Shown here piece after piece: positions 22,319 through 61,357 of a DNA stretch of 64,000 bases. Position numbers and translations under genes: made by a program. Within the stretch, counting starts at the first letter, position 1. Every line of letters starts with the position of its first letter. Source of the DNA: Trichosphaerium sp. ATCC 40318 (Eukaryota > Protista > Tubulinea). The notes under the pieces were generated by a model. That model had not been told where the DNA came from. It saw only the letters and a list, made by a program, of their open reading frames with translations, and searched no databases. The DNA lies in NCBI GenBank assembly GCA_038496445.1, contig JALMLS010000474.1:74568-138567 (forward strand), given 5' to 3'.

Positions 22319-24084
22319 CTAAAGAAGACCCTTTCTCTTTGCTTTTGTAACTTTGATACGTTCCACCAAGTTGAATCCAAGTTCTTTCAACACTTCTTGA
22401 TAGATTTCATTCGCTTGAATGTCAAGTTCATTCATCAAGGATCCAAATTCTTGTGCTCGCTCACTTGAGATACCCAACCCTGTCAATACTGACACCCAAT
22501 CAATTTCATTGTTTTGAAGCGGTATTGGTGCCATTGGAGAAACTGAAGTGATGGTTGATTTGGTATCACGCTGAGTGAATGTTGGCTACATTACAGTTAG
22601 TGTAAAGTAAATGCAAAAATGAAATAACATACTGTGTCAACAGATATGTTGGGTTTCTCAATCCATGACTGGTTGGGTAATACTACCTTTATATCGTGTG
22701 GTAATAGAATGGGGTTACTAGGTTCACCGCTAGGCTACAAACTCGTTAGGAAAGAATGTTAATATATTGTTTTTGACTGTACATTAGTGAACTTGTCTTG
22801 ACCTTGTTTTATTTCAAGGGCGTCTTTAATGATATCAATGTGCTCTTGAGCGTCTCCAAACTTGTTGTAGCCTTGATCAATCTTTGTGTATATTCCAGTA
22901 CCAACAATTGACAAGTAATTTCGTTTTTGGTCTTGTTTCAACTCTTTATGTAACTCTTCTAAAGTGTGGACTACCTAAACTAGCAGTTTGCATCGTATTG
23001 ACAACAAATGATTGATTACCTTTCTGTGGTTACTGAATGTCAATTTTTGTGGTGTTGATTTACCATGATCATTCTGTCCACCTGTGACCAACGTAAAGTC
23101 ATGAGATATTGCCAAGTAATGATATTGTTTAGTGGCAAACTCAAGATATTTTCCAGGTAATTTTAATGGTTTGTTTGATTTGAACAAATCAATCCATTTC
23201 CCTTTACCCCAACCAAACAAACAACCTTCATCATCAATCGCAAATGATGTATACATGCCAACATGGACAGATTTGATGTTATTGAGTCCTTTGATGATAC
23301 CCTGGCCATAATCGTCATCAATACCCAACCCAAGACACCCACGCCAGTTGTGTCCAAAAGAAAATACTTGTCCTGACTTGAGGAGAACAAGTACATGCCA
23401 ATCACCAATGGCAATATCAGTGGCATCATCAATACTTGGAACACGTGAAATTGTCTTTGATTTCAAGAATAATGATTTATATATCGCTTCATGGTCTGTT
23501 TGAAGCGAATTATATGTTGTTCCCCAAAGAAAGACATGACCTGTTGACGTCATTGCTCCACTTACATACGAGTTAGTTTGAATTTTTTGAACATTTTGAA
23601 GATTTGGAATAACCGCTGGTGATGAAACTTGCAAATTGTCGAATGAATGACCCAATCCTTGATTTAAGTTGTCTCCCCAAGAGTAGACATGACCTGAATG
23701 TGATAACGCCATACTCACACATAAGGCAGAGACTTTCGTGATATTGTTGAGATTTGGAACACGTGTTGGTGACGAAATAGGTGACGCAAAGTGACCCAGA
23801 CCCAATTCACCATTAAAATTATAACCCCATGCATACACAATACCGTTTGAATCAAGTGCAAGGCTATGAAGGCATCCAGCAGCAATACAGACGATATTTA
23901 TGAGTGATTTTATTGGTCTTGCGATAGAACTCTTTTTTTCGTCTGTGTTACCCAATTGGCGCTCATTGTTTCGTCCCCACGTGTAAACAAAGCCATCGTC
24001 TGCGATTACCATTGAATGGTTTAAACCAGTGGCCAAACGGTTAACATATTGTAAATTAGTATCTAAAGTCTGAGGTTCTGCCAT
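22319..24084 (-). CDS. RCC1 propeller - KFG linker - SAM-like protein, copy A
   Basis: Single ~1.06 kb exon with 7 RCC1 blades (GxxH..WGxNxxGxLG). Short exons follow with YNKFGDAQEHIDIIKDAL and DWVSVLTGLGIS..EVLKELGFNLVERIKV. Confidence 0.9.
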
Positions 24085-24546
24085 GATTCGCGTTTTAGGT
24101 CTTGACTGGACGAATACTGTTCCATTTTTGTCAATGACGAAAAAACACGGTCGTTTTTTTTTGGTCATCATAATTTTTGAATTCAGTAGAGTACTGAATG
24201 TTGCAAGTACAGTTTTACAAACTGTGAATTGTGTTGTTACGGTGGTAGAAGTGTTTACAGCTATGTGGCATGTTCAAGTGTTTTCTTGTCCACATCAAGA
24301 ATAGATATTTTGCCAAGAATTCTTGCTGTACCTTTCATTCGTGTTGTAGTAAGCTACGATATTGTCAGACAAATCCAATCGTCAATAGCCAAGCATTGAT
24401 TCACTTTTCTTACTTTCGTTGTGGGTTCTGATGCACTAATACCGCCCGTCCAAGCCAACTGAGCAACCATACGTTCCTTATATCTAACATAAATGAGGCT
24501 AGATTTTCAACAAGCACTTCATTTGTAACTTTTTTATTTGTATGAT

Positions 24547-26453
24547 TTACATGTTTTTATATTTGTACTCGAAAAAGTCTACACGTTCGCTTACAGTGAA
24601 CCCAAGTTTCTTCAAAATCTCACCTGAGATTTCGTTCATTTCAACACACAACCTATGTAATTTAGATCCAAGCTCATGCGCTCTTGGTTGATCAAACCCA
24701 GCTGATATCAATCTCTTAATCCATTTGGAGGTTTCAACATTTACTGTTTTTGTCTCAGGTAAGAATGGTGTTATCAAAGAGCGCTAGAATAAAATAGGAA
24801 TGAGCAAACTTAATCTATACTTGTATGTTTGAAAGGGTTGTACATTGGCGAGGTTGACGGACTTATTATCATTGTTCATCCAAGACAGTGTTGATACAAG
24901 TTCACTTGCGTTAATTGAAGCATTTTTTCGACAAGATTCAGTGTCGTTCGACAAAGACTCATCAACCTTTGTATGATGGTAAGTGAGTTTACCCAAAAAC
25001 AGAAATTAGTACCTGTGTGTTGTCATTACTGTTTTCTGTTGATTGTTCTTCTTTTCTGGCTCGTATGTAGTCACAAGCATTTGCTAGTATATCAAGGTCT
25101 TGTTTGGTTTCTCCAAACCTCTTAGGCACATCTCTTGTACCATCTCGTGATGTGAACATCTCTTCAGGTGGACGTACTTTAAGTGACAACTTATCAAATG
25201 GAGGCCGACGTTCTAGTGCCTAAACACGTGTTTAGTTCTAAGATGAGCATAAAATATGACTGCAGTACATTCAACTGTTGAGATGTTCCTTGGTCTTCAG
25301 ATGTGCCTTCTCTCATTACCAAAGTGTGATCGGCTTGTATTGCAATAGAACAATGTTGTTTAGTGGCGAACTCAAGATATTTTCCAGATAATTTTAAAGG
25401 TTTGTTTGATGAGAACTTCTCCATCCATTCACCTTCGCCCCAGCCATATAAATGTCCTTGAATATTAATAGCATAAGATGCGTAGGGACTAGCATTGACA
25501 GAGACAATGTTATTGAGTCCTTTGATGATACCCTTTCCAAGCTTTGTATCAACACCTAACCCAAGTCGCCCTCGATTGTTGTCTCCAAAGGAAAACACTT
25601 GTCCTGACTTGAGGAGAACAAGCACGTGATAATGTCCGATGCCAATATCAGTAGCATCCGAGATGTTTTCTACACGTGATATTGTATTTGTTTTCAAGAA
25701 TAAGGCATTGTTTATATCATTGTAGCGAGTCTTTCCCCAAAGAAAGACATGACCTGATTTTGTTATTGCTCCACAAACGAAAGAGTTCGTGCTGATTTTT
25801 ACAACGTTTTGTAGACTCTGAATACGTTTTGGTGTATGAACTCTTGTTTCTTTGTAAGAGTGAGCTAATCTCCCGTTAAAGTTGTATCCCCAAGAGTAGA
25901 CATGACCTGATGTTGATAACGCCATACTCACATATAAGGCTGCGACTTGAGTGATATGATTGAGCTTTAGTACTTGCGTCGGTGTTGAGATAGGTGACTT
26001 GAAATGGCCTAGACCTAATTCTCCATCTTCGTTGCGTCCCCACGAATAAACAATACCACTTGCAGCAGTAGCAAGGCTATGGTTTTGACCAGCTGCAATG
26101 CATACGATATTAACAAGTGAATTTATTGGATGAAGTATGGGCGTTATCCTTTGTTCGATATTTCCTAGTGATACTCAACAAGGATAATCTTTTGATAAAC
26201 TATTTCTAAAAACGCCCACAAAAACTTTTTAGGAAGGCGCACGTGATTTTTTTTTTTTGGATGAATTTTTATTCGCAAATATAAGTTATTAATAATACTC
26301 ACTGTTGTTATCTTCGTTGGTTTGGTATCGCCACACGTGAACTGAGCTGTTATTTGTGATAGCCATTAAATGCCCTCCAGCAGCTAAATGCCTACCACTA
26401 GCCAAAAGGTTACCGTAGTTTACATTAGGGTTCTTAAAATGCAGTTCAGCCAT
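24547..26453 (-). CDS. RCC1 propeller - linker - SAM-like protein, divergent copy B
   Basis: Start MAELHFKNPNVNY, intron in first blade, RCC1 blades, PKRFGETKQDLDILANA linker and KWIKRLISAGF..EILKKLGFTVSER tail. Confidence 0.82.
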
Positions 26454-26852
26454 AAATGCTGCGTTGTGAGGTAAATACTGCGGAAATTGTAAAACTTAAG
26501 AATGAACTTAACCTCAGCTAACGGTCATTGAACAAGAGTGAGACCCTTGCAAAGCAGGCTCTGTACACTACTTCCTAAGTTAGCGCTAAACAGTTTCCAA
26601 CTAAATCACTTCGCAACCTCAGTTTACTACCTTAGAAGAAATTATGTTTTTAGCCGTTAGCCCTCATCAGCAACTGCTTTGATATTGTTAAGAACCTCGC
26701 TATGTATGTTGTGATAGCTTTATTAGTTCATTGACTTGTACTCAGCGTTGGTCAATTCAAAGATACAACCAAATACTATTCTGACAAGTTATTTGAATTT
26801 TTTTTTGTGCACGTGAGCATTATCAAAAAAAATACATACAAACAACACATCA

Positions 26853-30629: not shown

Positions 30630-33286
30630 ATGGCCAGTTCACAGCTCCCTCTTGTTGCTATATTTGCCTGCTTTATAGTTGCTACAAGCGCTTTTTCAAC
30701 CTTTTTTTTGAGTGCATGTCCGGCAAGAGGTGATTTATGTGCCGGGATGTGTTCGAACGCGTACGTATTAGTTTTTTGAGAGAAAATTTTTTCCATCTTA
30801 CGTAATGACAGGGCAGACAATACACTACCTGTAAACGTTGAATCTGATGTATTTACAACCGGTTACGAACCAGGAGAAACGTATGACATTACAATAGATA
30901 TAGGAAGTGGTGAAAGCTGGAGAGTACGCTAAAACTATACACGTGATCATCTTTTTGGGACAAATAGTTTTGGTATTGTTTTTTTTGATTTCGTACATCA
31001 AAAAATCACGTGGATAAGATATTTGGATAGTAATGTCTTTAGGGATTTGTAATGTCCTTTTTCGACTCCGGAAACGTCGAAAGAGGTACTTTTAGTACCT
31101 CTGACACTAAATTTGATGCATCTTCTGCAAACATGTTATGTACACAAGGTATAAGGCACGCAGACGCTACCCCTGTTAGCGACACAAGGACTATTCAATG
31201 GACAGCCCCTGCTAGTGTTTCAGGCGATCTAACTGCCCAAGTACGTCTATAGTATATGATAGTACACGATATATAGCGTTAGCCTATGGTTTAATAGGTT
31301 GGCCGAAAGATACGGCCAAACCGGGCTTCTTGTGATTTTTTTTATGACGCTCTATGCTTATTCTGTTCGCTCTATTAGGCTTGGGTTGTTCTTAATCGTG
31401 CAGGAGCAGCAGGGTGCAGGTGGTTGGATCTTAGTAATACAGTATCGGTATTACAGCAAACAGAAGCGCCAACAGACGCACCAACTGATGCTCCAACTGA
31501 TGCACCAACAGACGCTCCAACTGACGCTCCAACTGATGCACCAACAGATGCTCCAACTGACGCACCAACTGATGCACCAACAGACGCTCCAACTGACGCT
31601 CCAACAGACGCTCCAACTGACGCACCAACTGACGCACCAACAGACGCACCAACTGATGCTCCAACAGACGCACCAACTGACGCTCCAACTGATGCTCCAA
31701 CAGACGCTCCAACAGACGCTCCAACAGATGCTCCAACAGATGCTCCAACAGACGCTCCAACAGACGCTCCAACAGATGCACCAACTGATGCTCCAACAGA
31801 CGCTCCAACAGACGCTCCAACAGATGCTCCAACAGATGCTCCAACTGAGGCTCCAACAGACGCACCAACTGATGCTCCAACAGACTCTCCTACTGAAGCT
31901 CCTGTAGCACCAACGACTGAAGCACCAGTACCTATTTTGGTTAGTGTTGGTGACTTTGTGTTCAATGATCGCGATATGACTGGTGTTCAAGGAAAGTACA
32001 AAAAAAAACCTTCGGAATGAATTTGTTACATTGTTTTACCATTCTGTTAACATTTTTTACTTAGGCATCAACTTCCCTTTCAATGATGACATGATTCCAG
32101 TAATTCTATTAAGTGCAGATGGATCACAAATTATTTCACAGACCACTACAAATAACCGTGGTGTCTATGAGTTTAATACACCAGACAATAACCTACAGCC
32201 AGAAACTGACTACATAATTTGTGTTGACTTTATGACAATGACAGAAACAGTTATTTTATCTCCACCTTTTGCTAGTGGTAACCCAGCAACTGATTCAAAC
32301 GGTCAATTAGCTACATATCCTGTATACAGCTCTACGGTACGAGAACCATCCTGAAAAACGTGCCCTTAAACAGAATTTTTTTCTTCAACTTCTCGCTTAA
32401 ACACGGAAGTGCTTAAACGTATCTAAGTTACTACACCGCAGATATCTACATTATAATTTGATATTTCTTCTTTAAATTCATTTATTAACTGCCTTCCTAG
32501 CCATTATCCTGCGCAAACATAACATCTCCGCAAAATGGAAGAAATGATGTGACGGTTGATTTTGGTTTAATAAGAGTAGCAGAACCTACAACAGACGCAC
32601 CAACCAATCCTCCTACTGAAGCACCACCAACAGATGCTCCAACAGCAGTACCTCCTACAGAAGAACCGGCAACAGATGCTCCTACAGAAGCACCACCAAC
32701 AGATGCTCCAACAGATACGCCAGCACCTACAGATGCTCCAACAGATGCTCCAGCTGCAGCGCCTATTGACATTCCTCCAACTATGATACCAACTGCAGTA
32801 CCTTCAGCTCCGCCTACGGATGTTCCTACAACTGCTCCTTCTATGGCTCCTGTTACAAACGCTCCTCCATCGACAGATGCTCCAATAGCACCTACATCAG
32901 AACCTACACCACCACTTGATTCTGACGAGTACGATTAGACTTTCTTTTTTTCTTCCGCCTGAAATTGAGCTGTTTCTGATCTCCTTGGTTTAGAGTTGGA
33001 CCTAAAGTACAAGGAACTGGTTCTGCATTACAATTTGGCAGTGGTTTCCAAGACGCTATTAACCAAGCGTACAATAGCGCTGTGGAAGATTGCACTGAGT
33101 AAGTGAAAAGAAACGAATGTCGCACGTGCGTAACTTATTTTTTATTTTAGATGTTGTGAAGCATTAGATTTCTCGAGTGCTGTACCTTCAAGTTGTATTT
33201 TAGAAGGAGGTTGTAAATACCGTTTTTGTGTAGGAAAATTGACACGACGTGTCACAGCAACATGCACGTGTACCTGCGCGTTATAA
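30630..33286 (+). CDS. Secreted Reeler-like domain + PT(D/E)A mucin repeats + SdrD-B-like domain protein
   Basis: Signal peptide, YEPGETYDITI..IQWTAP (Reeler), (PTDA)n, and SVGDFVFNDRD..TTTNNRGVYEF..TVDFGL (SdrD B-like). Confidence 0.8.
31460..31900 (+). repeat. 12-bp coding tandem repeat CCAAC(A/T)GA(C/T)GC(A/T), about 36 units
   Basis: Encodes PTDA repeats. Variation is almost only at synonymous third positions. Confidence 0.97.
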
Positions 33287-35622: not shown

Positions 35623-37282
35623 CTACGTTATATTGTTAACAGAGGCAGTCTTGAAGCTGGAGCTATTTCTTTTAAAGGTTTTTGACTTAGGAGGCAGAAA
35701 ACTCAATGATTGCGTGATAGACAATCCGTTGAACATTGTCACAAGTTCAATGAAAAAAATGCTATGTGCTATTGGATTCGATTGCCAGATAGGCCAAAGT
35801 ATCCAAGATATGGCGAGTCTCGCCATATTAAGCATAAAGAATAGACTGAGTGCAACACGAATGAATAATCTTCTGACTGATCCTTTCGATCGGTCCATTG
35901 CAGATTCCGATCTTCTTAGTCTTTGCCATAGTTTATACACTATTATTACAAGATACGCCATCACAATTCCGTTTACACATGTGTGGAAACCAGCGGATAT
36001 AATGAACGAATAAGATGGAAACGGAAACAAAAAGATGCGTAATGCATTCATTGTTGTTTCAAAGAGTATGACTACGAGTGATATGACATAGAACGGAACA
36101 GCTAATTTCTTGATATATGGTGTTACATCAAGGCTCATAGATATCATTGACTCGTGCCAATATAAAGCAATCAAAAGCTTTGACAAGGTTCCGCCAATAG
36201 TGTGAAACGTTTGTCCCACTTCATCATACCTAAACGGATGAAAAATCAGCAACAACTCGCCACTTAAAAACGATTAGTTTTTACCATCCTGGAAGAAGGA
36301 AGAGGTATCCATTTGGCTCTGGAATACACCATGCTAATCTGAAAGCACATGATACTACTTCAATAAGTAGCGCCACCTTTGGTATTGATAAACTGAAGCC
36401 TTCCACACTTACGAACTGATAGCTCCTTGAGGGCGTAGTTAGGCGATAAGTCCCTATTAAAAACATTGTACCTATACAATGCGATAGATAGTGCAATGCC
36501 CGATAGCAGCGCAACATAAACATGTCTCACTTACAACAATTTAGATTGTAACTACAGTTATTGAGAGAATTTGCTCACCTATAGACCAAGAGCTAGCGTA
36601 AACAGTGTACCAACTGTTTTCTGAATGAATAAAGGTTACTGTAGTATTCTCTTCAATGTGAGATACATGGCGCTGTCCAATCACAACAACTCTTAGGTTA
36701 CTTAAGTCATCTAAGCATAATAGATAAGTAAAAAGAAGAATGAAAATCGGAAAATACTAAGTCTAAGTCGATAAATCACGTGGTTCTATATTTAAACAAT
36801 CCCGAAAAAGTACGCACTTATTTTGATAAAGTTACCACGACCAACACGTAAATCATCGCTGGCTTCATAATATTCTACTATACCAACTACTCCTTGCTTC
36901 TCCCATTGCAAATAATTCTTACGGTCGTCTGGGTATTTGGCAAGTACTGCTTTTCCTACACGTGGAGTTTGTAATTGTAATCGAAAGTCCGAAATTGCTT
37001 GATACGATATAGAGCGCTGTTATTACCTTCTAAATTTACTCCTTCGCCTGGTACAACGAGCGATGCATTAAAAGAGTTAAATTCTGTTTTCGCTCCTCTT
37101 CGAAATACATATGTAACGCCAGGGTACTCTATTGTGGTTCCTAATATCGCTATTAAACAAGTTGTTGTCATATGACGTTTTGAAAAAAAACCAAAAGTTA
37201 GAAACAAACCATTTTGAGTTATCACTATGTTTCCTAGTACAATACTAACTATTGTAACCAAAGTTATCAAGCCGTTACGCAT
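35623..37282 (-). CDS. Signal peptide + PA-like domain + multi-pass TM protein, paralog 1
   Basis: GKAVLAKY..WEKQGVVGIVEY (PA-like) followed by several TM helices. Same exon layout as its neighbour. Confidence 0.7.
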
Positions 37283-37427: not shown

Positions 37428-39087
37428 TTAGGTTGTACTATTAACTGTACTATTAACAGATCCAGTTTTGAAACTGTAACTATTTGACTTAGTAGATGTT
37501 GGCTTCGGAGGTAGAAAACTCAATGATTGCGTGATGGACAATCCATTAAACATCACCATGAATTCAATGTAATAAATACTATGTGCTATAGGGTTCGATT
37601 GCCAGATAGGCCAAAATATCCAGAACATAGCAAGCTTTGCTATGTTCGCCATAAAGAATAGACTGAATGCAACACGAAGGAATAATCTTCTGACTGATCC
37701 TTTCGATCCTCCAATAGCTGCTCCTGATCTTCTTAACCTTTGCCACAGTTTAAGCGCTATTACTGTTAGGTACACCATCACAGTTCCGTTCACTGCTGCA
37801 TGGAAAGCAGCAGATATGTAGAATGAATAAGGAGGAATAGGGAACAATACAATGCGTAGAATGTTCAATATTGTTTCAAAGAGTACCAATACTAGCGATG
37901 TGACGTAGAACGGAATAGCTAATTTCTTGACAAAAGGAGTGACGTTGAGGCTCATGGATATCATTGACTCGTGCCAGTATAAAACAATCAAGAGATTAGA
38001 TATATTCGCTCCGATAGTGTGAAACGTTCTTCCTACCTCATCGTACCTAAATACAAAGAGAATTTCAGCACCTAAAGTCACAAAATACAAAAACGTTTAG
38101 TACCATCCTGGAAGAAGGAAGAGGTATCCGTTTGGTTCTGGAATACACCACGCCAATCTGAAAGCACATGATACTATTTCAATGAGTAGCGCCACCTTTG
38201 GTATTGATAGACTAAAGCCCTCTATACTTACGAACTGATAGTACCTTGGACAAGATTAGTTACTATCAAAACACATTGTGACTTAGAACGAACCTGTAGC
38301 ATGCTATAAATAGCGCAATACCTGTAATAAATGCTACAAAAATATGTCTTGCTAAGAACGTATTAGAGGATTAGCTAAGAAGCAACCTAGAAGTTGTATA
38401 CCTATAGACCAGAAGCTCTCGTAAACAGTATACCAACGGTTCTCTGAATGAATAAATGTGACTGTAGTATTCTCTTCAATATGGGATACATGGCGCTGTC
38501 CAATCACAACAACACGTAAATCACTCAAGTCATCTAAGGATATTTGATAAGTAAAAGAAAAGTTTTTGAAAACAATGCGAGAACTCGTGGAATTTCGAGA
38601 AAAAGAAGGGGGTGACTTACTTATTTTGATAAAATTACCACCACCAACACGTAAGTCATCGCTGGCTTCATAATATTCTACTATACCAACTACTCCTTGC
38701 TTCTCCCATTGTAAATATTTCTTACGGTCATCTGGGTATTTGGCAAGTACTGCTTTTCCTACACGTGGAGTTTGTAATTGTATTTGAAAGTCCGAAATTG
38801 ATTGATAAATTAAGCTAACCTTCTAAATTTACTCCTTCGCCTGGTACAACGAGCGATGCATTAAAAGAGTTAAATTCTGTTTTCGCTCCTCTTCGGAATA
38901 CATATGTAACGCCAGGGTACTCTACTGTGGTCCCTGATATCGCAATTAAACAATAATGACGTTTTTGACGAAAAAACCAAAACACCGGCCTTGTAAAAAG
39001 GGTTAGAAACATACCATTTTGAGTTATCAGTATATTCCCTATTACAACGCTAATTATTATAGCCAAAAATATCAAGCTGGTGCGCAT
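37428..39087 (-). CDS. Signal peptide + PA-like domain + multi-pass TM protein, paralog 2
   Basis: Tandem duplicate with highly similar exons and diverged introns. Confidence 0.7.
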
Positions 39088-39678
39088 GTTGCAGTGTATA
39101 AAATGAAGGTTAAGTCGCTTTCTCTTTGAGTGGTTTAAATACACCTCTAAGTGGTATTAATTGACATGAAAGGACATTAATATGAAAATATCCACCTTCC
39201 TCTTTGCAGTAAAATCTATCACTCCGGATCTTTCTTTCTTCAATTACTACTAGTATCTCTTGATAAATTTTATAGGCTCTACAATTGTTTGCTTGTTTTT
39301 AGCTCCAGATAAGACGGAATTCTGTGAACGCGACTGTAACAAAAAGTGAGCTCCAAACAAATTTTCCCAACATGTACAGTGACAATAAAAAAACCGCACG
39401 TGCCTTTCATAGCTACGTCCACCTTTTGTCATGAATGTAATCTTACCAGCATAGTACATTAAATCTAGACTAAATGCTGTTGGCATCAATATTGTTGACT
39501 GCCTTGACACTCTTGTTTGGCATCAAATTCTTATGCATTGCATTTTTCTACGGCCGATTTATAAGCGAACTTTATTCGCCACTTGTAAATGACAGAAAAA
39601 AAAGTCAAACGAAAAATCAGTTCTGCGTTCTCATTAGGACAACATAACTGTGCATACGTTTATCTTTAGCCAAAGAAA

Positions 39679-45708: not shown

Positions 45709-47751
45709 TTAACAATGGTCTTTTTTATACTTGATAACTTTTGCACGCTCAATTGCTGTAAAATCAAACACTTTCATTATTTCTCCTTTTAACTCTTGTA
45801 TCTCAATACATGCTTCATCCAACATTGATCCAAGTGTTTGAGCTCTTGATCTCTCAATCCCTGCCAATATCAAGATATTCACCCATTCAACTTTCCCTCT
45901 CAACGGTTGTTCTGGTACAACTGGAGCTGATGCTGAAGGCTGCAATAAAAGTTAGGTGATGTATCGCTCCTGAGAGAAAGAGTCGTACTTTGCCAATGTC
46001 TACTGTTTCAGGTACAACTGGTATTGATACATCTCTCTTATCCATATTAATAGATTCAATCCTGTTCTTCCAGGACTGTTGCGAAACAAGGTCATCTACA
46101 TCAACGGAGGGTTGAGAAGGGTTCTTTATGGATGAATCGCCATTGAAGTGCGAAGAGGTAGACTTGGCTCCAATTGAATCGGAAGAAGCATCCTTAACAT
46201 TGACGTAAATAAATATGTGTTAAATGAAATATCTTGGTTGTACGTTGCCAAGGTTGATCGTTTCAAACTTATCTTGAAGCCATGATTGTCTTGATACAAG
46301 ATCATCAGCATCGATTAAAGGTGGATGTTGATTTGATTCATTGGTGGGTGGATTGTAGTTGATTGAATCAATAGAGGCTTCTTGTCCTTAAAGTATAAAA
46401 GAGTTACAAAACATAAGAATAGTGGAATGAGCACTTACTTTGCTGTTTGGATTGAATGAGATGACGAGCATTTTCGAGAATCTGAAGATCTTGTTCTGTT
46501 TGTCCAAATTTCTGAGGTACATCTCGAATGCCCTTTTTTGACGTGAACATCTCTTCGGATGGATGTACTTTGATCGATGACTTGTTGATTGGCTGTTCAT
46601 CCAATTGTTGAGTGTCGATTGTATCTTTGTTTGTTTGCTAATGACTTGTCAAATAGACAGAAAGATGAATGAGATTACAAAGTACCTTTTGGTGATTGTT
46701 GAATGTCAACTTTTGTGGTGTTGATTGACCATAATCATTATTTCCACCTGTGACCAACTGAAAGTCATGAGATATTGCCAAGTAATGAAATTGTTTATTG
46801 GCAAACTCAAGATATTTTCCAGGTAATTTTAATGGTTTGTTTGATTTGAACGAATCAATCCATTTCCCTTGACCCCAACCAAACAAACAACCTTCATCAT
46901 CAATCGCAAATGATGTATAGTAACCAGCATGTACAGATTTGATGTTATTGAGTCCTTTGATGATACCCTGGCCATACTCGTCATCAATACCCAACCCAAG
47001 ACACCCATTGTAGTTGTATCCAAAAGAAAATACTTGTCCTGACTTGAGGAGAACAAGTACATGACAATAACCAATGGCAATATCAGTGGCATCATCAATA
47101 CTTGGAACACGTGAAATTGTCTTTGGATTCAAGAATAATGATTTATCTCTTGCTTCATCTTTTGTTGTTTCCCAGAAATTTAGTTGTTCCCCAAAGAAAG
47201 ACATGACCTGTTGACGTCATTGCTCCACTTACATACGAGTTATTTTGAATTTTTTGAACATTTTGAAGATTTGGAATAACCGCTGGTGATGAAACTTTCG
47301 AATTGTCGAATGAATGACCCAATCCTTGATATGAGTTGTCTCCCCAAGAGTAGACATGACCTGATTTTGATAACGCCATACTCACTTCATAGGCAGAGAC
47401 TTTCGTGATATTGTTGAGATTTGGAACACGTGTTGGTGACGAAACAGGTGACGCAAAGTGACCCAGACCCAATTCACCATCTGAATTACAGCCCCATGCA
47501 TACACAATACCGTTTGAATCAACTGCAAGGCTATGATTCCATCCAGCAGCAATACAGACGATATTTATGACTGATTTTATTGGTCTTGCGATAGAACTCT
47601 TTCTTTCGTCTGTGTTACCCAATTGGTGGTGATTGTTTTGTCCCCACGTGTAAACAAAGCCATCGTCTGCGATTACCATTGAATGGTTTAAACCAGTGGC
47701 CAAACGGTTAACATATTGTAAATTACCCGACGAAGATTGCGGCTCTGCCAT
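45709..47751 (-). CDS. RCC1 propeller - linker - SAM-like protein, copy C (1-nt frameshift near 47162)
   Basis: ORFs 47155-47751 and 46638-47204 join. B-type linker PQKFGQTEQDLQILENA. SAM-like tail 45709-45945. Confidence 0.88.
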
Positions 47752-48247
47752 TAAAACGTTAGGTTACGTGACGTGCTCAATATTCGTTGGCTTTTGAACT
47801 ACTAAGCTTGACGCCATTTCTTATGGTAGGTTTTAAACCTGCCGCAGATGAGTTACTACATTACAATAAGGGGTAGCATTGATACTCTTAGAATTCTAAA
47901 ACCGAATCGCTTCAACCCTTTTTACGTTATGTACTTCATTGTCTAATAGCGTTAGAGGATATCAAAGCGACATAAAAACATAGGTACATAGATGTTGGTT
48001 TAAACCACCTCACTAGATACTCGTACCTTCAACAGGCTCAACAGCGATAATTTTAGCGTTCGTTGGAACTAAATAAACATCAATTATGGTACGTGGGCGT
48101 TTGTAAGGCTAATTACCAAGTAAACACGTGAAAACGCCTGTTCCTGCGCCTATTTAAACGATTGTCTTTGTCTTGGCAAGTGCCAAGTACTTTTGAGTGC
48201 TACATCCACAAAAAGAACGCGAAACTCAACTGCTTTGCATCTAACAA

Positions 48248-49190
48248 AATGAACCTACCCACGTGAAGATTGTAAAGCTAAACACGAGCAATTTTATAAT
48301 GCACAGATTGAAACTGTTTTTTTTTTTTTGTTTTTTTTTTATTCGACGAGTATTTTCTTTTCTCACAGCCCTTTAGGAGCGTGGTAACTCAATCATGGTT
48401 ATTTGCCTAGATTCTAGTGATCCAAAAGACTGTGTTGTTGCTGGTTTGAAGGCAGGTGCTAAGACTGGCGGATTTGAAACTAACTCAAAGGGGTAACAAG
48501 GTTGTAAAAAGGGTAAGCATATCTTTTTTTTTTCTCATTTTGATCTTTACTGACGATTTTGTTTTACTCTGTAGATATAACGTAATTCAAGGTGATGGTA
48601 TCAACTATGCAATTGTCACAAAAATCTTGAAGGTTGTTGTTGCTGATGGCCTTCTCTGTCCAATGTGTACGTTACAAAGTTGCTTGGAGTTTAAGTTTCT
48701 TTGTATCTTATCTTTTGTTGATAGGTCAGTTTCAGTATGGGTCGTGGACTCCTAATGAAGGTTAACCATGATACCATGCCATTCGCTACAAAATTGTGCT
48801 ACATTCACTATGCCAATGGAGATGAGAGAAAGGTCATGAAATGCCCAAAAACAGATTCTGGAAAAATCAGCTTCACAGGTATTCGTAAGGTTATCTGTAA
48901 CGATAAGGGCGCTCCAATAATCTACCCTTGCGGTGCAGATGAAAAAGTAGACCCAGAGAAGAACCTCCTCAAAGTTGTCTATGATTGTGTACGTGCTCTT
49001 GTGTGTTGTAGTGGTTTTTTTTTTCTCAGTTACTGACTTCTTTTTTAGGGTCGAAGCCATTTTCCATGCTTTTTCAACTCTTTATTGTACCTTGTGCTCA
49101 TTGCAGTACGCTTTGGAAGCAGTGGATAGCATAGGTACACTGATACTGATGCGTCTAAATCTATAATATCGAGCTGAATCTTGGGTGGGA
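48248..49190 (+). CDS. Small multi-exon hypothetical protein
   Basis: Short exons separated by T-rich GT..AG introns. No recognised domain. Confidence 0.4.
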
Positions 49191-50740: not shown

Positions 50741-52491
50741 TTATAGAGCATTTTTGCGCTTTGCTTTGATGACCTTGATACGTTCAATTGGATTGAATTC
50801 AAGCTCTTCTAATACATCTGAGGTGATGTCTCCAGGTTTGATACCTGATTCATTCATTAACGATCCAAGCTCTTGTGCTCTTGCACTTGAAATACCCAAC
50901 CTCGACAATGTTGACTTCCAATCATATTTGGGAGTAGCGATTGATTGATTCTCTTGAGGTGGACAGAACTCCGACTAAACGAACAAAATTAAATGTGAAG
51001 AAAATAAAATTAAAACGAGACACCTTTGTGTGAGCAACTGAAACATGAGGCTTGTCATTCCATGATTGTTCAGATACAATTGAGGTGTCTACATCAAGTG
51101 GCAAGCGAGGATTGTCAACCTAAAATACCATGTGAGATAGGTATCGCTTATTTTCTGATACTTACATTGTTGATGTATTCATCTCGATTTTGGTGTATTT
51201 TAAAGGCTTCAAGGGCATCTTGAATGATATCAAGGTGTTCAGGATCATCTCCAAACTTGGTGTAATCACGATTGGGCTCAACCACAGCTTTTGACAAGTA
51301 CTTATCTTTTCGGTCTTCTTTTAACTCTGCATTCATTGCTTTCACAGCATCATTGTTTTTATCTTTTGCGATTACTTTATTGGCTGGTTTAAAGTGCTTG
51401 TAGATTGTGAGATAAAAAGAAAGACAAATAAGATTTCAAAGTACCTTTTCATAATTGGTGAATGTTAACTTTTGTGGTGTTGATTCACCAAAATGATTAT
51501 CTCCACCTGTGACCAACTGAAAGTCATGAGATATTGCCAAGGAATGAAATCGTTTATTGGCAAACTCAAGATATTTTCCAGGTAATTTTAATGGTTTGTT
51601 TGATGAGAACGAATCAATCCATTTCCCTTGACCCCAACCAAACAAACAACCTTCATCATCAATTGCAAATGATGTCCACACACCAGCATGTACAGATTTG
51701 ATGTTATTGAGTCCTTTGATGATACCCTGGCCATACTTGTCATCAATACCCAACCCAAGACACCCATTGTAGTTGTGTCCAAAAGAAAATACTTGTCCTG
51801 ACTTGAGGAGAACAAGTACATGCCAATCACCAATGGCAATATCAGTGGCATCATCAATACTTGGAACACGTGAAATTGTCTTTGGATTCAAGAATAATGA
51901 TTTATCTCTTGCTTTAATATCTGTTGTTCCCCAAAGAAAGACATGACCTGTTGACGTCATTGCTCCACTTACACACCAATTAGTTTGAATTTTTTGAACA
52001 TTTTGAAGATTTGGAATAACCGCTGGTGATGAAACTTGAAAATTGTCGAATGAATGACCCAATCCTTGATAGAAGTTGTCTCCCCAAGAGTAGACATGAC
52101 CTGATTTTGATAATGCCATACTCACACGATAGGCAGAGACTTTCGTGATATTGTTGAGATTTGGAACACGTGTTGGTGACGAAACAGGTGACGCAAAGTC
52201 ACCCAGACCCAATTCACCATCTGAATTACATCCCCATGCATACACAATACCGTTTGAATCAACTGCAAGGCTATGATTCCGTCCAGCAGCAATACAGACG
52301 ATATTTATGACTGATTTTATTGGTCTTGCGATAGAACTCTTTCTTTCGTCTGTGTTACCCAATTGGCGCTCATTGTTTTGTCCCCACGTGTAAACAAAGC
52401 CATCGTCTGCGATTACCATTGAATGGTGGCAACCAGTGGCCAAACGGTTAACATATTGTAAATTAACCGACCAAGTGCGAGGTTCTGCCAT
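50741..52491 (-). CDS. RCC1 propeller - KFG linker - SAM-like protein, copy D
   Basis: Intact propeller exon, YTKFGDDPEHLDIIQDAL, and YDWKSTLSRLGISSARAQELGSLMNE..ERIKVIKAK. Confidence 0.92.
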
Positions 52492-52842: not shown

Positions 52843-55011
52843 CTCCCTCGCCGTAACAAAAAATTTCCTCGCCGTAACACTTTTGTACCAAATGCCATAT
52901 TACATGGCTAAGATGTATGAGCGCACTGTTTAATATCTACTCCGAGTAATAAAATTTATGTTTAAGCAACTTGTGTAGTTTTTGAAATATGGTTAAGCAA
53001 TAACACTCTAAATAGCACTAGCTGATGAAGCAAACGCTGCGTGATAACGTAAAAGCCCACAACAACCAAATAGAAGCAGCTCAAAGAAAAAATCAACGGA
53101 AACGGAAGCGGAAACAAAGCGACAGTTCTAAAAATGGGTATTGGGTGGATTTGAACGATGCGTAAATGAAATTAAAAGCGAGGGATGGACTGTGCTTAAA
53201 AATGAAACAATTTCATTGCCACATGAAGAGCAAGTGTCTCAGCCTAATCTTGGAGTGTTTCAACGAGGTATGGGTACAGCTGGGCAAGTGTACTCCCAAT
53301 TGATACCAATACACATATGGGACCACATTCGGATAGCTACCAACCAAAAGCGTGAAATCCTAGCTAACAAAAAAAAGAATCAAATGTGGGGCGTTGAAAT
53401 TAAACTTAGTGAAATTTTACGTTATTTTGGCACACAATGGTTACGAGACCAAACTTCTGGTATGCAACAAGAGCAAAAAATTCTTTCATTAACAGTACTA
53501 GCTTCTATTAGTTATGAAGGGGTTTTAGCTCAAATGAGTACAAACAGCAAATACTGTAATCTGGACTTTTTGAGTCCACTGTGATGGAATATTTTGAATC
53601 AAAGTATCAGCACTGATGTACATCATTTGTGTGAATTGGTATCAGATGCATGTATGGAGGCTTGGCTTGCAGGAGAGTACATTGCCATTGATGAAACAAT
53701 GTTGGTGTGGTCTAAAAAAGATACAAATACAGTTCATATTTCGGGTAAGCCAAATCCAGATGGATTAATGGTATATGGAATGGCTGTTTATTCACACAAA
53801 GATAAACAATGTCCATACTTACTCGGATTGGTACCACATTGGAGAGATGCTAAACATGTGGCAGTGATTAAACCATTAGATGCTGCTAAGATTTTATTAG
53901 CTAGGTTTGAAAAGCACTATCCATTCAAACCACAAGCAGTACTTGATGCCAGGTTTATGGATTCTGACTTTCTAAACTGGGTTGTTGAATATGCAAAAGG
54001 AGCTAAAAAGGGTGGAGTTACAGTAGTGCTATCTAAGAATCATAAGACAATTAACATTATCTAACTTGAAAGCTATCATAGATTACAATGCTACAAGGGA
54101 AAAAAATTAACTTTTTGAAGATAAGAGAGAACTTGGCGATCAATATGATTAATTTAGCTGTATATTCAGAAAACCAATAAATTTAACTATTAATACTACA
54201 TGTGTACATGCTTATGATATATTTACAATTTGCTGTCGTTTGATGTGTACAAAGAAAACATAGCTGGCAAATGAAACAGCTCAGAAATGGACACTTTTCA
54301 CTGAATCCAAAGGATTAATCAATAATATTTGAAAATGCTCATTTTTCATGGATTCAATGCATTGTCATACATAATTCAGTCTCTGTATATTCTTTACATG
54401 CATTTAATGTTTTGTGTACATGCACATGCATATATAGACGCTGTACAGTACCAAATACTAGACGTAACTCATTTGCATTGCTCTACAAAAGCGTTTAAAG
54501 AGTAGAAAAGATAAAGTGTTCATCAAACAATTTTTGGGTTACCTTGTGCAGTACATGCCTATTAAAAGCGTTTGTATAACCAACTCTGTATTGCGTAGGT
54601 AGTATAAAAAATTCAAGAGTGTATTGTGCTAGCATGCCTTTGAAATGCTGTTTCTTTATTTTTTTTGGAACATTCTTTGAAAGACCCTTCATTTCATGCA
54701 ATGAACTATTTTTTGCTAGTTGAGCCCTTGGACCTAGTCAATACTACGTTAGATATAATAAAAGCATAACAATTTATACTGTGCCCTATCACATACATCA
54801 AAAACATATGGCAAAGAAAAAGTTGATACTTTTATTGTACATTCCGTAGAACATCACCAAAAACACCTATGTGGCTATCTAATCCAGAATTACAAGATAA
54901 ACATAATGTCTACAACCTGTAAAAAATTCAGATTATTTAAAGATATTTTAGGTCCAGAATTGAAGTTAAAATTTTGTTACGGCGAGGAAATTTTTTGTTA
55001 CGGCGAGGGAG
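52843..55011 (+). mobile_element. piggyBac-like DNA transposon with ~36 bp TIRs and decayed transposase
   Basis: TTTAT|CTCCCTCGCCGTAACAAAAAATTTCCTCGCCGTAACA ... TGTTACGGCGAGGAAATTTTTTGTTACGGCGAGGGAG|TTTAT. Confidence 0.9.
53141..54064 (+). pseudogene. piggyBac-family (DDE_Tnp_1_7-like) transposase, split and truncated
   Basis: IAIDETML..HISGKPNPDGLMVY..AVLDARFM motifs. Two ORFs, C-terminal part missing or degenerate. Confidence 0.8.
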
Positions 55012-55050
55012 TTTATGACGTTTTTTTTACTCTTACTCTAACATACAGCT

Positions 55051-58000
55051 TATTCTGGAATACTTGACAACTCTAAAACAAGAATATGAAACACCTACGC
55101 AATGCGCGCATTGTCGTTTAGGTCTGAACGAAAAGCGTTCGTTAGACATGTAATCAAGTTTTTTTTATGGTGATACGTGTTTTAACGTACTACAGGTAGA
55201 GAAGCGGCTAAGTATAACAAAACACAACGATTGGTATAGCGTTTCATGGCAAGATATCGTAAAACTAGGCGGGGGGGCTTTAAATAGGTAAATTAGATCG
55301 TTTTACGAGTGTTATTCAACGTTTATTGTAAAATATTACAAATGGCACTTACATTATGCGTAGCACGTACGAAGCTATTAACCGATGTATACCCAAATGT
55401 TAAATGGAACAAGTGGCTTTTCAGTACGTTTGATTAAATACGCCTGTATACAGCTCCGTAGACTATTTAATGATTAACCAACGCTTAAAACGATGCGTTA
55501 GTTAAAAAAGCATAGCAGCTAACAATTTACGTTAGACGCTGTGCCATTGGACTTTTGGGAATCACAGGATAATAAAATAGCGTTTATGAATCATGTACGA
55601 CACTTACACATGCTATAAAAACCCAAAACTTTTGTGTCATTCCAGAAAATTTTTCGGTTCAAAACGGACTTTTAGGTTAACTCGTCACGTGTTGTTTACT
55701 GACATGAATGTTTTATAGGTTGCTGAAACGCTAGAATACTGTTCAATGGACAGATTTTATGAACTTTCAATAGAGAAAGTTAAAAAACTAGGTGGTACAC
55801 AGCTGTTAAGGTGAGTCGTATATTACATAATAAGAAAATTTTAGGATACGCTTTTTATCTGAAACTGTGACTTATAACTCAATTAGACAGTACAGATTCT
55901 ACCTTGTATCATGTATGGAGGATATATTTCGCTCTTATAAATGGTTTCCATGGCGTTTTGGTACTACTGTTGTTAGTGAGATACTTCAAGAGTTCTAATA
56001 TATTTTTTTGTTGTAGTTCATCATAGCGTTCCTAAGAGTTATTGGTTAGACCTTGATAATGTCCTGGATTGTTTTATTGAGGTACACACATTCAAGCCTT
56101 CTTAATTGTTTAGCCAATCTTCAGTGTTATGAGAAGTTTGTGGGATGAGTAAAGCGAACATCCCTTTATGAAGAAAAAACCAACCTTGAAACTTTGTCAT
56201 TTTTACGTTTTTGCTTGACTATACTGACTTGTTGTAGGTTGAGCGTCTGCTTGATATAAGAAACGTAAGGGATTGGTATAACTGTAATAATTTTGATATA
56301 ACAAAATTGGGTTGTGCAAGTGTTATAACGTGCGCAAATAGTTCCAAGTTTTTTTTTACTGGTTACTCTTGTCGGTTTCATCTATTTTTATATGTACTTA
56401 TTAATATTTCTTAGCCAGTTTGGTTCTTCTTTACACTTGATTGTGAAGTATATGTACCCAGATCACGAATGGGTTCCTTGGAAGTTCAGTAAGGACCTAT
56501 TTTATTTTTTCTTCAAAAAAAAAAACTGTTCTTCATGACGTCTCATTAAAACTCCTTTTAGAGCAAGTGCCAAGAAATTTTTGGAATGATATTAACCACC
56601 ACCGCGCTTTCTTACATTCAGTAAGTCAATCACGTGTTACACATTTTGTTTGAAGCCAAAAGAAACGAGAAATTCATCTTTCATTAAATGACATAAAATC
56701 GCTTTATCTACCCACGTGTTTTGAGTTCTAATACTTTATCAGGCTGCTGAATATCTTAATGTGAAGTATCTAGATGATTGGTATGATATTACTGTAAATG
56801 ATATGAGACGTGCTGGGGGTTGTATTGTAGGGTACAGTTAAAATTAGTTAAATTTTTTTGGGTTTTTTTTTCCGTTTTTGCAAGTATTTTTGTGTTATGT
56901 CTCACAATGATATTCCAGGGCAGCTAACCGGAAGCTACCACATATTTTACAATCCTTGTATCCTGATTATAAATGGAACTTGTCTAGGTTTAGGATTAGA
57001 ACTCATGGTATGTCAAAAAAAAACGAAACAATCAAAAAAAACCACTTCTTGATTCCCAAAAGTTTACCTATCCCGAAACAAAGCCAATATCTCTTTGAAA
57101 ACGAATTAACACTGTTGGCTTGTGTAGGGATTTTTTACTGTCCTTTTCGGTTGCAAGTTACGTTATCAAAACTGCAGCTTGTCCTTTACAATATGTTGTT
57201 TTTTTTTCTTTTCTTTTGTTCGTTTTGAACAAATTTTCTTGACTCTATGACAAGTTCAAAAAAAGCTTGTCACGTGTGCATTCTTTGTTTCTGATATTTT
57301 AAGCATGTACTTTTCAAGACTGACTTCTTTCCTTCAAAGATACACCGAGGAATTACTGGAGGGATACAGCCAATGTCAAGAAGTTTTTAGAAAGTATTGC
57401 TGAGTCTCTTGAAGTGACGTCTCCAGCAGATTGGTATAGGGTTTCTCATACCAATTTGAAGAAATATGGAGGTTCTGGGCTAATAGCATACTGGCCGCAG
57501 ATCTTACATAAAGTATATCCATTACACACTTGGAAAGATGTTGAGTTTTCTACACGAGACAGAAGAACAACACAAGGGTATTTTTCCAAATCCGCTTGCA
57601 CTTGGCCTATTGGACTTAATTTATTATGAACTAAAGCCTGTGTGCTATATTTTTTTAGAAGTTTAGAGGAACTTGCTCTTTATTGTGAGGGAGCGAGGCT
57701 TTTGAAGGTTTTGGTCTTTTTTTTTTGTTCGAAAAAAAAAGCATATTTTTTCTTTCTTTTAATGGCTGTTACTTGCGTTGGTACTGACATTTTTTCAAAG
57801 GATAATGGCACAAACGCTTAAAAAGATATTTCCAAACATGGATATCATAGAAGAATACTACCTTGGACTTCGCGGAGACGCTGATAGAGCAGTTACGTTG
57901 GATGTATTTGTACCAGATGTCAATATCGCTTTGGAGTACATGGGCGAACAGCACTATATTGAATTTATTGGTGCGTACGGTCACGTACACCTACAAGAAG

Positions 58001-58591
58001 CTAGAGATGCTGAAAAAGTTCACAAGTGTAAAAAAATAGGTACAAACCAAGCTTCAAGTTCGTTTCTTGTTTTTTTTTTTTTTCACACTCTCATCTTCTT
58101 TAATTTCAACGCTGGTATTGACTTGAATGACTTTATTTTTCAGGAGTTTCACTTATTCCTATTCCATTTTGGTGGGATACAGGCGATGTAGATAGCTTAA
58201 TTTCAACAATTTTGTATTATAGGTAACAAACACGCTTTTCTTATTATTTTCATTTTCTTTTCAGTTTTTTTTTTCTTTTTGCTTTTCAAAAACCGGTTAT
58301 TTCTCCCTTTCTCTTCCTGCTTACAGGATTTTTCTAGACCAGATATTAAACTACCAAAACCTGATGTTAGTCCGTTATTAGAAATACCGGAAAAATCAAA
58401 GAAGGAGATTTTTGGAAGTACGTTGTAGGAAGAGCAAACCGACTTTCGTCAACTATCCAGTTTGCTTTTTTTTTTCTTTGACATGACATTTGTTGGGGAT
58501 TCACTGCTCACTTCTCTGTTTAGTTGTAGCAATATCAAAGCTCATGAGTGCTAATTCATTTGCCTCTTTTGAAGACAGTGTACATATGTGA
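55051..58591 (+). CDS. Multi-exon Trp-rich repeat protein with C-terminal PD-(D/E)XK/RAP-like domain (first exon probably ~52680-52771, upstream of the transposon)
   Basis: About 5 repeats of W.F..VP..FW....N...F...AE.L.....DWY.V....GG. C-terminus LDVFVPDVNIALEYMGEQHY..RDAEKVHKCKKIG..IPFWW. Confidence 0.75.
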
Positions 58592-59315
58592 TAAAAAGTA
58601 TCAGCTTGATTTGATTGTCAAGCTATCATTTATTTGTGGTCAATCAAGGTTAACTTGGATAATTGATAGTGCTTAGAACAGTGTTAGGAACTAGAGCTGT
58701 GCTTCATTTTTCCTGTTTACTCGCTCATTGCGCTCAATAGTTTGATATTAGGCCTAGTGATAGAGTCCTATTAGCTTCTTAATAGCTAAGCCAATAAGAC
58801 GAAAATAATAAACTCAATAAGGCTGTAATGAAAATCGTGTTTTTAGGAAGGAGTTGGTAAACAAAGAACAAAACAGGATTTTTTACTGCAAAGGATTTTT
58901 AGTGTTTTTATGAGCTGGTAGCAGCTCATACATACACCGAATATTGTCTTTTGGAAATAGCTTATTGTATTTATTTGTATCATCACTGGGTGCAATAAAG
59001 CATTGTTCATGCCTCTGCCTAGCTGTGCACCTCCGCGTGATCACTTTAGAAAGCGTGTATATGCCTTTAACTGTTACTGTGGCCATGAACCAGTGCTCAT
59101 GTAACAGCAAACAGACTGTTTGAAACATACCAAGGAACACATATGGTGGTTGGAAGCTATCCAAGGGCAATAGCTTCTATAGGTGGAACCAAATAATAGT
59201 AAAACATATTATGCTTCTAACTGAGTTTTATTTGTTCAACACTACAATTTTTGTTCATTTATTTTTCCCTTCGTTCTATTCATGTTAAACGGTTTTTATC
59301 AAATGGTGCTGAGTT

Positions 59316-61357
59316 TTAAAGAGTGTTGTTGTTCTTTGCTTTGATGATTTTAATACGTTCCCTCAAGCTGAATCCAAGATCTATCAGCACATCTTTATCA
59401 ATTTCATCAATTGTTGCGCCTGCATCGTTCATCAATGATCCAAGTTCTTGAGCTCTTTGATTTGCGATACCCAACTTCATCAATATTGACTTCCAATCAG
59501 TTTCAACATTTAGAACTGATTGATTCTCATGTGGTACACCGAAATGTGACTAAACAAACGCCATTAATAACAATTAAGTGTTACAACAAGAAGAAAGAAG
59601 CAAAGTCGTGGAAGTGTACCTTATTCTTTATGTCAACAGAAACATTTGGTTTATTGAGCCATGATTGTCGACTTAGGTTGTCAGATGAAGAGGAGCTGCT
59701 TCTAAAATCGTCATCGGGTGCAGGACTCTGATAAGACGATTTCTTTGGTGATGGAGAGTTGCTGGCTATGTCATGCTGTGGCATACTATTTTCCTCTAAT
59801 TCATAATACTAGGAACCAATTAGTAACATTCATCTCACATGTGCGGTATTTTATAAAGCAAATGGTACCTCATTGTTGGCTTCAACAGATACATTTGGTT
59901 TATTGCTCCAGGATTGTTGATGTAACACTTGGTTGTTTGATAATGTTTCATCAACTATCAGACTATACTTGCGTTGGTTACAATCCTACAAATGTCAGTA
60001 AGTTGTTCACCTTATAGTGAGACATACAGAGTTATTTTGTTGCTGTATGTTCAAGCCTTCAAGTGCATCTTGAATCATGTCAAGGTGTTCAGTAGTATCT
60101 CCAAACTTGGTGTAGTCATGACTGGGATCAATCACAGCTTTTGACAAGTACTTATCTTTTCGGTCTTCTTTTAACTCTGCATTCATTGCTTTCACAGCAT
60201 CATCGTTTTTATCTTTTATTGTTACTTTGTTGGCTGGTTTAAAGTGCTTGTAGATTGTCAGACAAAAAGAAGACAAATAAGATTTCAAAGTACCTTTTCA
60301 TAATTGGTGAATGTTAACTTTTGTCGTGTTGATTGACCACAATGATTATCTCCACCTGTGACCAACTTAAAGTCACGAGATATTGCCAAGTAATGTTCTT
60401 CTTTATTGGCAAACTCAAGATATTTTCCAGGAAATTTTAATGGTTTGTTTGATTTGAACGAATCAATCCATTCCCCAATACCCCAACCAAACAAACAACC
60501 TTCATCATCAATCGCAAATGATGTATACAAACCAGCATGTACAGATTTGATGTTATTGAGTCCTTTGATGATACCCTGGCCATACTTGTGATCAATACCC
60601 AACCCAAGACACCCATACCAGTTGTATCCAAAAGAAAATACTTGTCCTGACTTGAGGAGAACAAGTACATGACAAAGACCAATGGCAATATCAGTGGCAT
60701 CATCAATACTTGGAACACGTGAAATTGTCTTTGGATTCAAGAATAATGATTTATCTCTTGCTTCATAATCTCTTTGAAACACATGGTTTGTTGTTCCCCA
60801 AAGAAAGACATGACCTGTTGACGTCATTGCTCCACTTACATAGTGATTAGTTTGAATTTTTTGAACATTTTGAAGATTTGGAATAACCGCTGGTGATGAA
60901 ACTTCAAATTGTTGAATGAATGACCCAATCCTTGATATTCGTTGTATCCCCAAGAGTAGACATGACCTGATTTTGATAATGCCATACTCACATAATAGGC
61001 AGAGACTTTCGTGATATTGTTGAGATTTGGAACACGTGTTGGTGACGAAACAGGTGACGCAAAGTCACCCAGACCCAATGACCCATATGAATTACTCCCC
61101 CATGCATACACAATACCGTTTGAATCAACTGCAAGGCTATGAAACCGTCCAGCAGCAATACAGACGATATTTATGAGTGATTTTATTGGTCTTGCGATAG
61201 AACTCTTTTCTTCGTCTGTGTTACCCAATTGGCGGCTATTGTTTCGTCCCCACGTGTAAACAAAGCCATCGTCTGCGATTACCATTGAATGTTCGTAACC
61301 AGTGGCCAAACGATTAACATATTGTAAATTAACCGACGAAGATTGTGGCTCTGCCAT
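59316..61357 (-). CDS. RCC1 propeller - KFG linker - SAM-like protein, copy E (1-nt frameshift near 60907)
   Basis: ORFs 60836-61402 and 60285-60953 join. YTKFGDTTEHLDMIQDAL and DWKSILMKLGIANQRAQELGSLMND. Confidence 0.9.

Follow-up and report, generated by a model that had tools for sequence, protein, structure and literature searches.

The stretch of DNA analyzed here, 64,000 nucleotides (nt) of Trichosphaerium sp. ATCC 40318 (assembly GCA_038496445.1, contig JALMLS010000474.1, positions 74,568 to 138,567; hereafter the window, with positions counted from its first letter), is eukaryotic DNA with a G+C content of about 37%. It carries five genes for proteins with an RCC1-type propeller, here called copies A to E, all on the minus strand. 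A first-pass annotation of the window had proposed these five copies as a candidate system of variable receptors, and their coordinates are borne out, from the stop codon of copy A (22319-22321) to the ATG of copy E at 61357. The genome of Trichosphaerium sp. has been reported as 70.9 Mb in size, with 37.69% GC and heavy giant-virus gene traffic, in a paper in which RCC1 is unmentioned (PMC10521059).

Copy D (50741-52491) is intact. Its four exons (51445-52491, 51166-51396, 51024-51119 and 50744-50974, with the stop codon at 50741-50743) are separated by three GT..AG introns of 46-49 nt (51397-51444, 51120-51165 and 50975-51023), all of which are skipped in contigs of public sequencing runs, and the spliced frame is open over 535 amino acids (aa), comprising the propeller, a linker and a 60-aa end domain. 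Neither a signal peptide nor a membrane segment was seen when the copy D protein was read directly from its sequence. Copy A (22319-24084), recognized by its open reading frame (ORF) and by Pfam RCC1/WD40_RLD matches, has an uninterrupted reading frame, with a propeller exon at 23020-24084, a SAM-fold exon at 22322-22585 and likely introns at 22975-23019, 22735-22782 and 22586-22632, placed by homology to copy D. Copy B (24547-26168; SAM-fold exon 24550-24735) is an older, diverged paralog with approximately 74% DNA identity and 57-60% protein identity to copy D; stop codons interrupt its blade 1, its blade 7 is diverged, and its tail is of the type found in copy C.

Among the four closer copies A, C, D and E, only A and D can be read without interruption. 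Copy C (45709-47751) consists of a propeller exon (46686-47751), an intron (46638-46685) and a tail unlike that of copy D, made up of a mid exon (46434-46637), two exons with a QSW motif and a SAM-fold exon (45721-45927). One extra base in its blade-4 loop (approximately 47165-47205) shifts the frame by +1, which may be either a true frameshift or an assembly error. A small intron in this loop was considered and rejected, as no GT..AG pair of adequate length lies there. Copy E (59316-61357; propeller exon 60294-61357, SAM-fold exon 59319-59549) has a 1-nt deletion at approximately 60905, within a variable codon of blade 3, and its tail includes an additional exon that duplicates the QSWxNKPxVSV motif, a repeat also present in the tail of copy C. 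The splice structure of copy E was assigned by eye; a brute-force splice search returned thousands of models for copy A and none for copy E.

The variation among the propellers was analyzed in copies A, C, D and E, which share 1.05 kb of propeller exon (348 aligned codons), using Nei-Gojobori partitions for the rates and exact tests for the counts. The DNA alignment consists of long invariant stretches interrupted by replaced blocks of 2-7 nt. The amino acid varies in 70 of the 348 codons, and 14 codons vary only synonymously. The first-pass annotation had described the exons as almost identical including synonymous sites, which agrees with the long identical runs of DNA, but the synonymous sites are 3-7% different and not invariant. 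It had also located the variability in two patches of each blade, and every residue string that it quoted is present in our blade-by-blade alignment. Taking these patches as 35 slots defined a priori, i.e., in every blade the two residues that precede H/V/T in 'GxxH' plus positions WG+1, +3 and +4, the amino acid varies in 32 slot codons, compared with 38 of the 313 other codons (Fisher p=2e-22). The two patches do not account for all of the variability, as a third slot lies just ahead of the opening strand of the following blade, and residues 5-9 and a blade-4 loop of variable length also differ.

The dN/dS ratio (non-synonymous over synonymous change) lies between 1.03 and 2.33 over the whole exon in the six pairs of copies. 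In the slots, the non-synonymous difference per site (pN) is 0.29-0.49, compared with a synonymous difference (pS) of 0.031-0.068 in codons with an invariant amino acid, a contrast that should not be read as a simple ratio of rates, given that the scaffold has been homogenized and the slots may hold older divergence. The substituted residues resemble those of paratopes, as had been suggested: Tyr makes up 18.5% of the residues in the slots, compared with 2.2% in the scaffold, there is an enrichment of Trp, His, Arg, Cys and Glu, and the slots contain no Gly, Ala or Pro. Although 59% of the slot codons are Tyr codons (TAY) or their one-step neighbors, no stop codon occurs at the 35 slots in the four copies. 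Transitions and transversions number 16:32 in the slots versus 10:2 at synonymous scaffold sites. Synonymous changes show a weak trend to adjoin variable codons (7 of 14 versus 28% expected, p about 0.06), which could stem from old divergence carried along by hitch-hiking or from mutagenesis acting locally. The Gly codon of the 'WG' that precedes slot 88 (codon 87; 52231-52233 in copy D) reads GGT, GGC, GGA and GGG across the four copies.

The assignment of the propeller to the RCC1 type, already made in the first-pass annotation, is supported by Pfam matches of the propeller exon to RLD/RCC1 families above the curated thresholds (PF25390, 231 bits with a cut-off of 150; PF00415, E=1.5e-35; PF13540, E=2.7e-30) and by an AlphaFold2 (AF2) model of the copy D propeller, which has seven blades, a predicted local distance difference test score (pLDDT) of 92.7 and a predicted template modeling score (pTM) of 0.91. 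Blades within one gene are 26-35% identical. When the model was compared with solved structures by Foldseek, UVR8 was the best match, with a template modeling score (TM) of 0.84, followed by RPGR, HERC2 and RCC1. The proposed equivalence of the slots with the GWRHT motifs of UVR8 is also found in a HMMER alignment, in which the first slot corresponds to the Trp-Arg of GWRHT and the second to the residues after WG (W250, K252, W302 and others). The dimer interface of UVR8 is formed by these Trp and Arg residues together with W94 (PMC4501546).

Loops were assigned to the two faces of the propeller by strand parity from the DSSP string of the model, which is a topological argument and not a surface map. 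On this basis, the variable sites are predicted to lie on one face, as had been claimed: 43 of 105 loop residues on the slot side (face X) vary, compared with 4 of 62 on the opposite side (face Y; p=7e-7), and sites with at least three different residues number 22 in the slot-side loops and none in the opposite ones. The blade-4 loop of variable length is on the slot side. The hypervariability of this face would argue against one conserved GTPase partner.

A linker of approximately 120 aa with two conserved short motifs joins the propeller to the C-terminal domain. The first-pass annotation had called this tail a SAM domain, a claim that holds at the level of the predicted fold only. An AF2 model of the tail, built from an alignment of eight sequences, has a pLDDT of 86 overall and above 90 over the domain, and shows a compact five-helix bundle of approximately 65 residues. 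In structure comparison of the 60-aa tail, the best match was Sla1 SHD2 (3idw; Z 9.4, root-mean-square deviation 1.5 Å over 61 of 66 residues), and the next were some 40 SAM domains with Z scores of 4.3-6.4, including those of SARM1 and TIR-1; nearly all of the top 50 matches were SAM. The SAM domains of SARM1 and TIR-1 oligomerize immune effectors, and SHD2 is part of an endocytic adaptor. At the level of sequence families, on the other hand, Pfam contains no SAM match to the tail. A feature search of the ESM Atlas returned SAM as a weak lead (score 0.87), and a profile of the tail compared with the sequences in PDB returned only noise.

According to the first-pass annotation, no described family is known to have this architecture, and in public data it is indeed very rare, as an exhaustive profile search across 1.84 billion representative proteins retrieved only two real relatives. 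One of them, the MMETSP transcript P0095, matches the family in its order of RCC1 propeller, linker and tail and is 39% identical to copy D. The other, P0096, originates from Trichosphaerium sp. ATCC 40318 itself (MMETSP0405) and has the same linker motifs and tail behind a different N-terminal part. A word-based protein search with copy D found only generic RCC1 proteins of at most 36% identity, the best non-self matches being bacterial, and a search of the same kind with P0095 found no paralogs. Our literature searches turned up neither a hypervariable RCC1 family nor a combination of RCC1 with SAM in Amoebozoa, and no account of such variability on an RCC1 scaffold.

Support for transcription comes from contigs of four public runs and not from raw reads; the runs appear to fit single-cell transcriptomes (2023) and an MMETSP run (2015). 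The contigs skip minus-strand GT..AG introns of 46-49 nt exactly where the models of copies C and D require them, including, in contigs from both run X1 and run X2, the intron of copy C at 46638-46685, and members of the family are therefore transcribed and spliced. Many contigs match the copies at 99% identity or more. Where contigs differ from copies C or D in the propeller exons, 17 of the 19 listed differences affect codons already found variable in the comparison of copies A, C, D and E, and 14 of the 19 fall in the a priori slots (p about 1e-10).

Several features of the alignment point to concerted evolution of the propeller exon. Homology between the copies begins at the ATG, and in the 300 nt upstream the similarity is not above that of shuffled DNA in any of the six pairs. 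Copies C and D have 88% protein identity in the propeller and approximately 33% in the SAM domain, and the mid exon of copy C resembles that of copy B. In addition, the 25 informative sites that divide the four copies two by two support all three possible groupings (by 10, 9 and 6 sites), with the sites for each intermingled over the length of the exon. Because of this limit at the ATG, the unlike flanks and tails, and the conflicting, interleaved sites, the propeller exon of these old, dispersed paralogs has evidently been homogenized as a cassette, by gene conversion as judged from the alignment. The slots lie 10-100 nt apart within otherwise identical DNA, and conversion would thus erase them unless their diversity were favored or re-created. 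The residue bias of the slots, the lack of stop codons in them and their transversion-rich substitutions argue for selection rather than drift as the likely basis of the slot diversity.

Considering these results together, copies A to E belong to a multigene family, both clustered and dispersed, of predicted cytosolic proteins that combine a seven-bladed RCC1 propeller, a linker and a SAM-fold tail. Approximately 40-60 codons on one face differ in every copy, mostly encoding Tyr, Trp, His, Arg, Cys and Glu, on a near-identical scaffold. We hypothesize that each paralog would be a binder with its own specificity, with diversity favored by selection, and that the SAM tail might couple binding to self-assembly or to partners bearing the same tail. 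The likeliest targets would be fast-evolving foreign molecules, such as those of giant viruses and intracellular bacteria, in which case the family may constitute an innate recognition repertoire. We give this reading as a whole, with recognition of foreign and fast-evolving molecules ranked first, a somewhat better than even chance, and an immune function seems plausible. Several observations weigh against it. The protein contains no effector or enzymatic domain, so that signaling would rest entirely on the SAM tail. The linker and tail exons match no Pfam family, SAM_1 and SAM_2 being unmatched even at E<=10. The comparison was limited to four close copies, of which two are frameshifted, and part of the cluster is decaying. 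Finally, with a homogenized scaffold, the ratio of slot to synonymous differences is not a clean rate ratio.

Other roles for a variable binding face have to be considered. The proteins could be cargo or organelle adaptors of endocytic or phagosomal trafficking, with the variable face picking cargo or prey and the tail docking on coat or Rab machinery that bears it as well. The tail would fit such a role, since its match to Sla1 SHD2 (Z 9.4) stands above those to other SAM domains (at most 6.4) and P0096 carries it on a different N-terminal part. A common fold is no proof of function, however, hypervariability is unusual for housekeeping adaptors, and the idea overlaps with a recognition repertoire if the cargo is microbial; as a separate explanation, we regard it as unlikely. 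The same pattern of variation is known from the WD40 incompatibility genes het-d and het-e of Podospora (PMC12222747), which raises the question of whether the family recognizes polymorphic host proteins of conspecifics, as in heterokaryon incompatibility, within the shared cytoplasm of a multinucleate and possibly fusing amoeba. Fusion genes are expressed in Trichosphaerium, which is a multinucleate organism (PMC10521059), and the lack of a signal peptide or membrane segment would suit a cytoplasmic function. On the other hand, no cell fusion was seen in more than 30 h of Trichosphaerium recordings (PMC10521059), the diversity described here is between paralogs of one genome and not between alleles, and no polymorphic partner locus is known, which makes self/non-self recognition rather unlikely.

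The remaining alternatives concern the origin of the diversity itself. If it were not selected, the slots would be unconstrained loops in a decaying cluster, in which short-tract conversion erases the differences in the scaffold only. The frameshifts in two of the four close copies, the two remnants described below, the inflation of the apparent ratio by scaffold homogenization and the tendency of synonymous changes to adjoin variable codons (7 of 14 versus 28% expected, p about 0.06) are compatible with this idea. We nevertheless consider it improbable, as conversion tracts would erase slots that lie only 10-100 nt apart in perfectly conserved DNA, the slot residues are strongly non-random and avoid stop codons despite 59% of codons being Tyr (TAY) or its neighbors, the loops of the opposite face are almost invariant, and family members are transcribed and spliced. 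Alternatively, either in the germ line or in somatic nuclei, a targeted mutator or micro-conversion could write new codons into the fixed slots. The blocks of change are contiguous and disregard codon borders, as at the Gly before slot 88 with its four third bases, and the limits of the exon are cassette-like. However, all substitution types are seen, without a deaminase-like or adenine-specific signature; the 64-kb window contains whole copies and two remnants only, and neither an array of donor cassettes nor a template repeat; no reverse transcriptase adjoins the genes; and variants are common to copies in a mosaic fashion, as under ordinary recombination. Programmed diversification is thus very improbable in our view, and that a dedicated slot-writing process, possibly differing among nuclei, would yield an anticipatory, antibody-like repertoire of RCC1 receptors is a very doubtful prospect. 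Collapsed or chimeric paralogs could also produce false differences, since highly similar paralogs are difficult to assemble, and the single-base frameshifts of copies C and E could be homopolymer errors of the kind documented for fungal NOD-like receptor (NLR) repeats in long-read assemblies (PMC12222747). Such an artefact is barely credible as the source of the slot pattern, because contigs of four independent public runs, from other members or strains, vary at the same codons, many of them matching at 99% or more, and the copies differ in their tails and lie in flanks unique to each.

For such a putative family of variable cytosolic binders, the closest known system is that of the HNWD genes of Podospora anserina (het-d and het-e, as well as het-r) and other fungal NLRs. 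In HNWD, a few fixed codons per repeat, located on the interaction surface, show hypervariability and evolve under diversifying selection (PMC12222747). The parallel with HET WD40 receptors drawn in the first-pass annotation is well founded in this respect, as both systems have a near-identical propeller scaffold maintained by concerted evolution together with hypervariable interface codons (PMC12222747), and both are multigene families with pseudogenes and with cytosolic products, as predicted for the copies described here. HNWD proteins, however, have WD40 repeats that are at least 80% identical within a gene and change in number, along with a NACHT domain and, at the N terminus, a HET effector. 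In the Trichosphaerium family, the fold is that of RCC1, blades of the same gene share only 26-35% identity, the high identity is between paralogs, and a SAM-fold tail is the only addition; Pfam detected no NACHT or NB-ARC domain in the propeller exon, linker or tail, and the propeller exon matched RCC1 families only.

UVR8, RCC1, HERC and RPGR have the same fold and Pfam families (TM 0.84 for UVR8), and the slots coincide with the Trp-Arg of GWRHT and the Trp positions at WG+1. The positions of the Trp triad (W233/W285/W337), which are conserved in UVR8, are the variable ones here (CH, RN, YR and others), and the proteins are therefore not UVR8; nothing suggests UV sensing or Ran exchange. 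BLIP-II, which is also among the fold matches (3qi0, 1jtd), is an RCC1-like propeller that acts purely as a tight protein binder, and it binds via aromatic residues of one face. It differs in being secreted, single-copy and bacterial, with shorter blades and no diversified family. The tail resembles Sla1 SHD2 and the SAM domains of SARM1 and TIR-1 in that a modular protein ends in a five-helix SAM fold of approximately 60 residues, but there is no TIR or other effector attached and no Pfam SAM match. A fixed scaffold with variation at ligand-facing positions is also found in lamprey variable lymphocyte receptors (VLRs) and in the products of the diversity-generating retroelements (DGRs) of bacteria and phages. 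These systems use programmed diversification, by cassette assembly or by reverse-transcriptase mutagenesis at adenines. No cassettes and no adenine-specific pattern were found in the window, and the analogy with VLRs made in the first-pass annotation is not supported, as the window lacks an array of cassettes and gives no hint of somatic assembly; the DGR analogy likewise fails on mechanism.

A frozen scaffold with diversified binding positions is a hallmark of recognition systems, including antibodies, VLRs and plant and fungal NLR sensors. If recognition of viruses or bacteria were true for this family, it would represent a previously undescribed branch of cell-autonomous immunity, in a lineage to which giant viruses are hosted guests and which has been described as a training ground for microbial pathogens (PMC11323580). 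The family may also serve as a natural library of the positions of an RCC1 propeller that tolerate any residue, which would be useful for binder design, and it would offer a clean case of gene conversion and selection for diversity coexisting at a scale of 10-100 nt.

Two remnants of the family lie elsewhere in the window, both on the plus strand. At 9342-9698, the first 35 codons of the family propeller exon, with 91% DNA identity to copy D over the RCC1 part, continue in frame into MORN repeats (PF07661, E=6e-11), and this may be either a recombination product or a decayed chimera. At 14427-14783, an orphan, decayed tail consists of a mid exon with the KFGD motif, 76% identical to that of copy D, and a SAM-fold exon; exon 3 (the QSW exon) has been lost and the upstream propeller is absent.

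Among the neighboring genes, a pair of adjoining ORFs located between copies D and E (53141-54064, plus strand) looks transposase-like by eye and has no Pfam match. A two-part gene is tandemly duplicated on the minus strand (35623-36255 and 37428-38090; 36956-37282 and 38815-39144) and encodes a multi-pass membrane-like protein, the copies being approximately 70% identical and without a Pfam match. At 31299-32938, a long perfect array of APTD/TDAP-type tetrapeptides, open in several frames, is followed by a Pro/Thr-rich stretch, and the encoded protein is probably mucin-like and either secreted or exposed at the surface. The gene at 47844-48989 (plus strand) is transcribed, as X1 and X2 contigs skip a 288-nt GT..AG intron at 48088-48375; two further stretches of this gene carry other letters in these contigs, from a paralog or another strain. 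Finally, two genes with an F-box and LRR_6 repeats (6047-7522 and 15949-16755, both on the minus strand) share an identical N-terminal 100 aa, the second ending early. Their repeat units (AGVHTIxLxxxxVTDxGVKAL) are near-identical save for a few fixed positions, so that the pair forms a second nearby family with a frozen scaffold and variable slots.

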